Below, piece after piece: positions 24,118-27,100 of a stretch of 46,656 nt of DNA. Positions within the stretch are counted from its first letter, which is position 1. The number at the start of each line of letters is the position of its first letter. The translations under genes were made by a program, and so were the position numbers. Under the pieces are notes generated by a model that was not told the origin of the DNA, searched no databases, and saw only the letters and a program-made list of their open reading frames with translations. The DNA is from Macrostomum lignano (lineage: Eukaryota), in contig NIVC01004419.1 of the NCBI GenBank assembly GCA_002269645.1, forward strand, positions 1 to 46,656. Direction: 5' to 3'.

Positions 24118-27100
24118 TCAGTCCATAGGCACAATGCCGAGCCAGGCGCTGACCGGCTTGGCCTCCCTGCAGGCGTCCTTCATGGCCTCGCGCATGAGCT
24201 CGCCTTCCTCGTTCTTGCCAACGTAGCTCAGCGTTAAGCGTCCAATTGGTGTCTCGTCGCGCTGCCCGCCGCCGCCGCCCTCCTGGCTGGATGTTGAACG
24301 GCGCCTGACGCCACTGAACACGGACAAGATTAGGCTGGTGTCGCGGCGTTGATCTTTGGGCACCTTGAACTGGAAGGACTCGCTGAGCCGGACTGACCGG
24401 CTGTCGCCGCACTGGTGATGCGAGGACTGCTTGCTCTCAGCCTTGCTCTCGCCGTGATAGCGCTTCAGCTTGATGAAGATGTCTGTGGGGTTGGCGGAGA
24501 GGTCTTTTTGTTAGGGTAGACAGGCAGGCAGGCAGGCAGGCAGGCAGGCAGGCAGGCAGGCAGGCAGGCAGGCAGGCAGGCAGGCAGGCAGGCAGGCAGG
24601 CAGGCAGGCAGGCAGGCAGGCAGGCAGGCAGGCAGGCAGGCAGGCAGGCAGGCAGGCAGGCAGGCAGGCAAGCAGGCAGGCAGAAGAAGCAGAGAAGGCT
24701 GTTTAGGGTAGTCAGGAGAGGATTTTTAGGGTAGTCAGGGAAGACTGTTTAGTGTAACTGTTTAGGGTGAGGGTTGTCAGGGGAGCCTGTTTAGGGTGAG
24801 GGTTGTCAGGGGAAACTATTTTGGTTAGGCCATAGATTGTTAGGATTCTTGAACGCTAACGAGTGCGTCATTGGCAAAAGCACGAGTGCGCGAAGCGCAC
24901 GAGTGCTCTTTGCCATAGACGCACGAGTTGGCGTGCATGAATCTCATTCTTATTTGATTCTTTCATTTTACATTCTGCCCAAAAAAGGTTATAATTTTAA
25001 CATTTTAGCCCCCACATTTTAACCATAGACAAAATCAATCTTGCACGCTGGAGATGGTGAGGGGAGGGGGTAACGAAAGGAGATTACAATTGAAAGCTAG
25101 TTGCCACTATAAAAACAAAGCAATGGTTTCTCTAATCAACCCGTCGATTCTTCCTCCGCTTATGGACATGCGATACGCAACCGTCGACGGTTTGTCATCC
25201 GAAGAGGTGGCAATTGCAGCCATTTCTAGCAAGTGGGAAAGAGAGAACGAATGGCTGCTGCCCATGTTGGATGCAATTGCTGACACCGATTTAGAGAAGC
25301 TGCTAGCGACTGACCCGATGTCGAATGCAAGTCTGGATGAACTGGAGAGCCTTGCTCAGCAAGTTGAACGTGAGAATCAGTGTCAATCAACCATTGCAAA
25401 GGAATTGGCTTCCGTCGGTCGTTTCGAGAAGTTTCTGACTGACAATGGTGTACAACTGGATCTCAAAGTTGCCTCTGTGGATGATATAGCTAAATTCGTG
25501 AGGTACTTTTATGCTGGATTGAGGAAGCCTGACGGTTCTTTCTATTCGCCAAACACTGTGGTTGGAGTCCGATCTGGTTTGTTTCGCCATATTATGAAGT
25601 TGCGAGCGATTGACATAATAAATGATAAAGCCTTTCATGCCGCCAATCTTACCATGAAGAGCATTTGCAACGCTTTCCTTCGATCTGGAGGAAGAGTGAA
25701 GCACTACGATGCTATTGAGAGTGACGACCTGAAGAAGCTCGGTAAATACTTCGATCGGTCGAATCCGGTGCGTCTTCAAGAGGAAGTATACTTTAACATC
25801 ATTTATTACTATGGGAATAGAGGCCGTGAATGGTTGCGTGGTTTGAGGTTTGATCGGTTTTGTGAGAAGCGGCTCGCCAATGGACTCTACGCGATTGAGC
25901 TTGTTCAGGGAGATTCAAAGAATCTACATGGTTCTATCAGCGTCGCCGTCTTGGTTGACAACAAGCAAGCGTTGATGGTGTCAAAGGGAGATTCTGCCAA
26001 ATGCCCAGTTGAGGCGTTCAGACTGTACAAGCAAAAGGTCACCGAAGTTGAAGGATGGAACGGAGTGGACTTCTTTCTGCGACCAAACGCTAACTTTCGT
26101 TCATCTGGTAAGTGGTACAGCAAGAGTGCAGTAGGAGTCAACACCCTTGGGCCTCTGATGAAGAAAATTTCTACGTCCGCCGGATTGTCCAAGCCATACA
26201 CTGCGCATTGTGTGCGTGCAACTGTAATCACAGAACTTCACGACGCTGGATTTAATGTCGAAACTATCGCTAAAGTGACTGGCCACAAGCGAGGTGCATC
26301 CGTCGAGCGCTACATTCGACGAGGGAATAAACGAGAGCAAGCGATCTGTGCTATGAGCCATCAACTAACGGCTGCCGTGGAGGTGGCTACTACGGCCGAC
26401 CCTCAAGTTGTAGGCACTGAGGCAAGTGACCCAGTTGACGTTATCAACGATCCTACGTCGGGCTCGGTGCGCTGTGTGCGAGTTATTCCGGAAAATCGGA
26501 AGAATTTGAAGATTAGAGCCAATGGTGACACCAACGTCATTGAATTTGTATTTGAGTAGCATCTGATCGCAAGCGAAAAACTAGTAATGATATTAACCAA
26601 TTTTCACTCGTTATTTTCTTGTTGTCTAAAAATAAAGTGCAATCCTGCACGTAAGATGCATTAGACCTAAAGGATAATTTGCCATAGACAACATCAATTC
26701 TGCACGCTTGGGCGTGCCAGATCAGCAATCCTGCACGCAGAATCAAATAAGAATGCATTCCCTAGATGGGCCACTCTGTGTACTTGGGCGCGCTCATAGG
26801 TATTTCTTGAAAATTTTGGCAACCAACGTCTATTTATAGTTTGAGTTCAGTAGCTGGAGCGACGTTCATTTGCTGCTGAGCACGGCTAGAAGCAATAATT
26901 TTTTCTAGCTTTTCTCGGGGAAAATTTGTTTCACATACTCGTAGTTTGAAGGAGAGTGGCCCATCTAGGGAATATACGATCTATGGATTAGGCAGCAAAA
27001 AGGTACCTTAAGGTCGGCACCGACCCTACAGAGGCCCTGACTCTCGCCCAAATGTTCGCGTCTGGGCTCCTCTAGGGACTGATGAAAGGTCGAATCAGCA

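Follow-up and report, generated by a model that had tools for sequence, protein, structure and literature searches.

The whole of contig NIVC01004419.1 from the Macrostomum lignano assembly GCA_002269645.1, a 46.6-kb stretch called the window below, was analysed, and at positions 24840-26755 it contains an element that we read, with a probability of roughly 0.78, as a recently inserted, probably autonomous tyrosine-recombinase transposon of the CryptonA group, for which a circle-based mechanism is proposed. An earlier note on this DNA had suggested a young autonomous Crypton, and this suggestion holds: the element is multi-copy, occurs at unrelated loci with shared sharp ends, encodes the complete catalytic set on a Cre-like fold, and finds its best match in CryptonA. 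The span given there, 24830-26986, can be kept only in part, since it encloses the Crypton but also includes about 230 bp of an unrelated foldback element. Activity of the family probably continues, or ended only very recently. The element is a further representative of a known kind, CryptonA; the kind itself is not new.

The copies compared were sampled as loci carrying an annotated protein. The 90% protein cluster of the window recombinase holds three further M. lignano proteins, whose loci (L002, L003, and L004) lie on other contigs and have different neighbouring genes; with the window copy they make up family A (n = 4). In the alignment of these four copies, homology sets in at TTAGGATTC (24840) and stops after ...AAGAATG (26755), and the flanks beyond are unrelated. 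The length of 1,916 bp is taken from this comparison, because identity among the copies begins and ends at these two positions. Shared boundaries among paralogs, proposed earlier as a check, were found, with the same end bases in the family-A copies. Inside the element, the window copy, L002, and L003 show pairwise identity of 99.2-99.9%, and L004 is an internally deleted and rearranged copy. A sister family in M. lignano, family B, encodes a protein 54% identical to that of the window family. It was sampled at L005, L006 (with its duplicate L007), L008, L009, and L010, representing five independent insertions, and its source names (Mlig005367g3 to g20) imply about 20 loci. Family B ends are equally sharp, with the start at TAATATTCCTGCACG and the end at ...GACAATG. 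Common boundaries in unrelated flanks are found, then, at four family-A and five independent family-B loci. On contig NIVC01002664.1, the family-A copy L003 and the family-B copy L008 lie about 15 kb apart. The principal features of the window copy are the following.

24840..26755, + strand: Crypton element, 1,916 bp, from TTAGGATTC... to ...AAGAATG (alignment with L002, L003, and L004)
25054-26559, + strand: tyrosine-recombinase open reading frame (ORF), 501 amino acids, uninterrupted (ORF list, Pfam, alignment, and model)
24836..24839, + strand: left-flank target ATTG (A-N-T-G), a short imperfect direct repeat of the terminal AATG

The recombinase is the sole coding ORF of the element (478-501 amino acids), with neither a reverse transcriptase nor a DDE transposase beside it, and the remaining ORFs overlap on the opposite strand. 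The uninterrupted frame of 501 amino acids described before is confirmed; the real start is probably the second ATG at 25123 (478 amino acids), with the first 23 residues probably untranslated, because L003 loses the first-ATG frame through a 1-bp indel and family B begins at the homologous methionine. A hidden Markov model search, another of the checks suggested earlier, placed Phage_integrase of Pfam above its cutoff, DUF3504 (E 3e-5, 24.4 bits) under its cutoff of 29.7, and QRICH1 also below cutoff; DUF3504 is recorded for sister family B. The complete R-K-HxxR-H-Y set that had been read from the sequence is present as R256, K289, H385, R388, H411, and Y420, at conserved columns of a 14-sequence alignment. 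Residues R256, G257, E259, K289, N290, H385, R388, G410, and Y420 are invariant in the 14 homologues and H411 is nearly so, and the HxxR and GH motifs align to Tn1549 Int. The AlphaFold model obtained from the 14-homologue alignment is confident for residues 110-440, with a predicted local distance difference test (pLDDT) of 80-93 in the core. Its top Foldseek matches are Cre, covering both domains (E 5e-9, target template modelling score about 0.65); other fold matches include XerH, integron IntI4, lambda Int, Tn1549 Int, and human QRICH1 (9hjt). When the recombinase cores of Additional file 4 of PMC3212892, a machine-read and noisy text, were compared by BLASTP, CryptonA was matched with E 1e-16 to 3e-23 (best CryptonA-2_SP, 36% over 174 amino acids), KCTD1 with E 1e-9, and CryptonI with about 1e-7; CryptonS and CryptonF remained above 0.005 and DIRS gave no match. 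By this BLASTP ranking, the recombinase is in sequence nearest to CryptonA rather than to CryptonI, F, S, or DIRS. A further M. lignano protein in UniRef, P0006, is a 759-amino-acid model with ankyrin and caspase domains, in one piece of which 38% of the Crypton recombinase is matched at 63% identity; either the prediction is chimeric or it reflects capture of a fragment.

It is highly improbable that this sequence is non-mobile, whether as a domesticated Crypton-derived host gene, a DIRS/Ngaro relic, or a segmental duplicate. The weak Pfam matches to DUF3504 and QRICH1 would suit a host gene, and M. lignano has undergone a recent genome duplication, from which several gene copies could come. 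However, the flanks are unrelated in all copies and homology halts at the same base, the neighbouring genes differ from locus to locus, and the catalytic set is full, unlike that of DUF3504 genes. A domesticated DUF3504 host gene was rejected on these grounds (multi-copy, unrelated flanks, complete catalytic set, no extra domains), and where the earlier note had considered a single-copy domesticated gene as the alternative, copies were found at non-homologous loci. A DIRS/Ngaro retrotransposon was also rejected: the element is only 1.9 kb long, no reverse transcriptase or RNase H ORF lies within its boundaries, the Pfam families found are all recombinase-related, and DIRS recombinases gave no BLAST match.

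The mobile, Crypton reading of the element is also supported by its termini. The element end is AATG in 9/9 insertions of families A and B, and in 9/9 the left flank ends with A-N-T-G (AATG in five, ATTG in three, ACTG in one); the right flanks have nothing in common. The flanks of L003 and L005 match the right end over 6-7 bp. Such a 4-bp A-N-T-G/AATG repeat is the pattern expected, from these sequences, for site-specific exchange at a short core. Long terminal repeats are absent. The perfect 17-bp inverted repeat reported before is present (24945-24961 / 26739-26755) but is terminal on one side only; it consists of the right terminus and a subterminal left copy, and so the two arms are not a pair of termini. 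A terminal inverted repeat transposon bounded by the 17-bp arms (24945-26755) was likewise rejected, since 105 bp to the left move with every copy and the arms have no target duplication. The sequences CCATAGA and TCTATGG, proposed earlier as the outer ends, exist in the window but lie outside the element, and homology among the copies never reaches them.

By analogy with the fungal Crypton model and the bacterial Y-transposons, it is proposed that exchange by the recombinase, between A-N-T-G in the flank and AATG at the element end, would release the element in circular form. The attachment site would then be the junction of this circle, ...AAGAATG|TTAGGATTC... (in wider context ...AATAAGAATG|TTAGGATTCTTG...), and it would recombine with A-N-T-G targets, which often resemble the right end over 4-7 bp. 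In this mechanism, short repeated boxes on both sides of the ORF would act as recombinase-binding sites assembling the synapse, like arm or accessory sites. The boxes and the sequences associated with them are listed below.

24844..24943, no strand: imperfect palindrome at the left end, about 100 bp, its base carrying boxes in inverted orientation (fold)
24845..24855, + strand: box L1, ATTCTTGAACG, degenerate, 5 nt from the left end; its family-B homologue is a perfect ATTCCTGCACG
24886..24900, no strand: palindrome centre GTGCGC-GAA-GCGCAC, flanked by GCACGAGTGCG repeats; the same in family B
24932..24942, - strand: box L2, degenerate and inverted (CGTGCATGAAT on the + strand); pairs with L1 in the fold
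24945..24961, + strand: left subterminal arm of the 17-bp inverted repeat, CATTCTTATTTGATTCT, directly after the palindrome
25023..25049, + strand: upstream copy of the 27-bp repeat: CCATAGAC, then 6 nt of spacer, then box L3; conserved in family B
26631..26636, + strand: AATAAA, likely poly(A) signal (putative, from sequence), inside a TCTAAAAATAAA block conserved with family B
26641..26651, + strand: box R1, AATCCTGCACG; in family B one arm of a perfect palindrome
26682..26708, + strand: downstream copy of the 27-bp repeat: CCATAGAC, then 6 nt of spacer, then box R2; 89% identical to the upstream copy
26727..26737, + strand: box R3, AATCCTGCACG (motif scan)
26739..26755, + strand: right arm of the 17-bp inverted repeat, AGAATCAAATAAGAATG, forming the right terminus and the end of all four family-A copies

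The four boxes named in the earlier note were recovered as ATYYTGCACG at 25038, 26642, 26697, and 26728, all on the + strand, and these are the only matches in the window; 0.43 would be expected, and 0/100 shuffles reach four. A scan in which two mismatches to ATTCCTGCACG were tolerated extends the set to six 11-bp boxes in family A, at element positions 6(+), 93(-), 198(+), 1802(+), 1857(+), and 1888(+), besides which there are three CCATAGAC motifs. The two degenerate boxes had been missed, as had the left palindrome, whose fold as single-stranded DNA has an energy of -39.4 kcal/mol (z = -9.0), with 0/200 shuffles as good. The 27-bp direct repeat was correctly placed on both sides of the ORF, and this arrangement of CCATAGAC, 6 nt, and box is common to families A and B. 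Binding of the recombinase is a candidate role for the boxes. The excision of the ORF through the 27-bp repeats and the inversion through the inverted repeat, both suggested earlier, have no support: neither product is seen in any of the nine loci, and the breakpoints of the L004 deletion lie elsewhere.

The importance attributed to the repeats from the start is borne out by their conservation in family B, despite 54% protein identity. The boxes, the CCATAGAC motifs, and the inverted repeat follow one another in the same order and orientation as in family A, the left palindrome is present as well, and one extra inverted box makes a perfect palindrome, CGTGCAGGAAT-GAAGTC-ATTCCTGCACG, which has 11-bp arms and a 6-bp spacer and is internal. 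The left 100 bp are about 88% identical between the families, vs 58.5% for ORF DNA, which points to strong constraint or to recent exchange of a module. The inverted repeat of family B has a different sequence (CATTGTCTTTTGACCA on one arm against TGGTCAAACGACAATG on the other), and 5/18 positions are changed on both arms with complementarity kept, that is, in a compensatory way. Two peculiarities of family B were also recorded. It has a 76-bp GT-AG intron directly after the catalytic GHK motif (L005 5171-5246, and in other copies too), at a place where family A has none. L006 and L007 (~3497-3920) carry a variant with a left end extended by 288 bp. It contains a near-perfect palindrome, each arm ~40 bp long, as well as another site resembling the junction, ATTG|ATATATTCCTGCACG; these features suggest either left ends in nested or tandem arrangement, or an internal junction copy targeted by the element itself.

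A more distant relative, L011, from a metagenome scaffold (36% protein identity), shows the same end plan built from unrelated box sequences (215-350, 2640-2790). There, GGGCCCTAATGTCA has three direct copies and one inverted copy, TAGTATCCACCTT / AAGGTGGATACTA are found at both ends, and the left palindrome folds with z = -12.2. The L011 ORF contains at least one intron.

These comparisons bear on a second explanation, according to which the repeats serve above all in regulation (promoter, terminator, or silencing-related) or are leftovers of internal duplication, and only the extreme ends recombine. Some of the layout would agree with it, since one 27-bp repeat lies ~75 bp upstream of the likely start codon, other repeats follow just downstream of the conserved AATAAA, and the number of GCACGAGTGCG repeats varies among copies. 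However, a box is also found 5 nt from the left end and another 1-2 nt ahead of the right-terminal arm, and L011 keeps the layout with a different box, which is what would be expected if the sites co-evolve with their own recombinase. A mainly regulatory role is for these reasons considered distinctly unlikely.

The second debatable issue is the form in which the DNA would be recombined. The element holds an inverted copy of its own end junction, formed by box L2 and the left arm, with a spacer of 1 nt vs 4. When the ends are hypothetically joined, the right terminus, the left palindrome, and the left arm become one ~140-bp palindrome, and the predicted junction hairpin is strong both in family A (138 nt, -56 kcal/mol, z = -11.8) and in family B (-55.4 kcal/mol, z = -10.5). 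In the predicted hairpins of both families the G|T crossover adjoins a 2-3-nt bulge. It could be imagined that animal Cryptons of this clade use a structured attachment site, in which the ~140-bp palindrome forms on end-joining and exchange takes place at the asymmetric 2-3-nt bulge, the palindrome being a cruciform or hairpin substrate or, alternatively, the internal inverted copy of the junction matching, in a DNA transposon, the internal complementary region of DIRS; we regard this as doubtful. A folded-DNA substrate of this kind, comparable to integron attC or CTX-phage attP, or alternatively a DIRS-like internal complementary region, is favoured by the hairpins with their bulge at the crossover, by the five compensatory changes in the outer stem between the families, by the L011 left palindrome, and by the presence of an integron integrase structure among the fold matches. 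However, the covariation of the arms gives no proof of DNA folding, because a protein with two binding sites in duplex DNA would lead one to expect it just as much; inverted sites co-vary without folding, and the observation does not discriminate. The inner palindrome, in turn, has 5-6 mismatches and gave no clear covariation signal between families A and B, only the outer 17-bp arms co-varying, and its centre is partly lost in L008, L010, and L004. The best structural match is Cre, which acts on duplex DNA. A single-stranded stage is without support, and the hairpins are predictions on a hypothetical junction, for which binding sites in duplex DNA are just as good an explanation. Recombination of a folded substrate is thus unlikely when compared with the proposed exchange through a circle, in which the boxes would be bound as sites of the recombinase.

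Comparison with known systems places the element among the Cryptons and at the same time sets it apart by its ends. CryptonA elements (CryptonA-2_SP of sea urchin, CryptonA-1_OL of medaka) resemble it in the single-recombinase ORF, the length of ~2 kb, the low copy number, the lack of a C-terminal GCR1_C domain, and the similarity to DUF3504, and they provide the best sequence match (Kojima and Jurka, 2011; PMC3212892). In the same survey, animal Cryptons have no terminal repeats, direct or inverted, and no defined ends, and their hosts belong to six phyla, Platyhelminthes not among them (PMC3212892). Unlike these published animal Cryptons, the present element has ends defined by nine insertions, the 4-bp A-N-T-G/AATG repeat, the boxes, and the palindrome; the repeat and palindrome layout of the ends has not been reported for animal Cryptons and is newly described here. 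Fungal and oomycete Cryptons (Crypton-Cn1, CryptonF, CryptonS) carry 4-6-bp direct repeats at both ends, which were taken as the recombination substrate and for which the circle model was proposed, and CryptonS-2_PU is listed with TAATG (PMC3212892). These short terminal repeats correspond to A-N-T-G/AATG here; however, the recombinases are very distant (E above 0.005), CryptonF has the extra GCR1_C, and no box or palindrome layout is described for them in PMC3212892.

DIRS1-type elements have a tyrosine recombinase, inverted terminal repeats, and, internally, the sequence of the joined termini in inverted form. A likeness to them is seen in box L2 and the left arm, which form an inverted copy of the junction between the right terminus and box L1, but the present element is 1.9 kb long, has no reverse transcriptase or RNase H, and gives no BLAST match to DIRS. 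For Tn916 and Tn1549, movement is by way of a circular intermediate, with mismatches accepted at the crossover (PMC5871717). The catalytic motifs of the M. lignano recombinase align with Tn1549 Int, and its whole fold is that of Cre; the differences from Tn916/Tn1549 and Cre-loxP are the eukaryotic host, the sequence identity of only ~15%, and the lack of a conjugation module. A symmetric lox-like core is not present at the Crypton ends, and only family B has a perfect site, which is internal. With ZMYM2-4, QRICH1, and KCTD1 the element has the ancestral fold in common, as indicated by the Foldseek match to QRICH1 (9hjt), the BLAST match to KCTD1, and the weak DUF3504 match. Those are single-copy host genes with an incomplete catalytic set, fused to host domains (PMC3212892), whereas the element described here is multi-copy, mobile-looking, and catalytically complete.

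Several observations weigh against an active transposon with box-bound ends. The boxes are mostly in direct orientation, unlike the inverted pair around a 6-8-bp spacer of typical tyrosine-recombinase core sites. An empty site was not obtained (a homology search with the last exon of the neighbouring SRCR gene returned only a Schistosoma protein), no excision footprint was found, and the circle-junction 27-mers of families A and B had no match in a metagenome collection, in which M. lignano is not expected. A GC-rich 5' segment of ~65 bp, present in L002-L004, is absent from the window copy, which also has four private amino-acid changes, and the window copy itself may be impaired. The near-identity of the left 100 bp could come from recent exchange of a module rather than from constraint.

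To our knowledge, Crypton transposition has never been shown experimentally, and the circle model for Cryptons rests on analogy. The locus supplies near-identical copies with intact recombinases, base-exact termini, and a 4-bp target motif, together with a short list of candidate binding sites that are conserved in a 54%-identical family and mirrored in a 36%-identical relative. M. lignano is a flatworm for which transgenesis is available, and therefore junction, binding, and transposition assays are easy to design. A small eukaryotic site-directed recombinase might be obtained from such work. If the DIRS-like internal copy of the junction is real, then it would provide a mechanistic link between Cryptons and DIRS elements.

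The insertion site is itself composite, and two further features of the window describe it.

34398-34883, 29073-29411, and 24121-24510, minus strand: synaptotagmin-like tandem-C2 gene in three pieces (ORFs joining into a C2A-C2B protein)
26756-26990 and 24830-24839: foldback or MITE-like (miniature inverted-repeat transposable element) sequence split by the Crypton, with a perfect 21-bp inverted repeat and longer imperfect arms

By sequence, the Crypton sits, in antisense orientation, in the intron that separates pieces two and three of the synaptotagmin-like gene, as the earlier note had it for a host intron, because the three minus-strand ORFs form one C2 protein. The Pfam C2 match improves from E 3e-10 to 1.6e-18, with the whole profile covered, once exons 1 and 2 are joined; a single synaptotagmin-7 C2AB alignment spans the join of exons 2 and 3; and all three exons are found at 100% identity in the UniRef M. 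lignano model A0A1I8GBD3. NCBI lists no synaptotagmin-like gene for the contig. The perfect 21-bp inverted repeat of the foldback lies at 26757-26777 / 26953-26973, and CCATAGA (24830) and TCTATGG (26986) belong to its arms. With the Crypton removed, the left foldback arm reads CCATAGAT-TGC-ATTCCCTAGATGGGCCACTCT and matches the intact right arm, CCATAGAT-CGTAT-ATTCCCTAGATGGGCCACTCT, and it is on account of this match that the Crypton is placed as having landed inside one foldback arm. No further foldback copies were found in the window or in 10 loci.

A 28-bp satellite, TTAGGGTCATAGATTGTTGTCGGTACTT, occupies 4560-7267 of the window with ~97 units. The 11-mer CATAGATTGTT occurs 68 times in this satellite and once more exactly over the left junction of the Crypton (24831-24841), and the insertion site therefore falls within a satellite-like unit. 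The host intron and its neighbourhood are dense in (CAGG)n, (AGAC)n, and (AG)n microsatellites and in tandem arrays of 69 bp and 33 bp, located at 24521-24683, 29415-29770, 22825-22955, 32087-33181, and 33784-34388.

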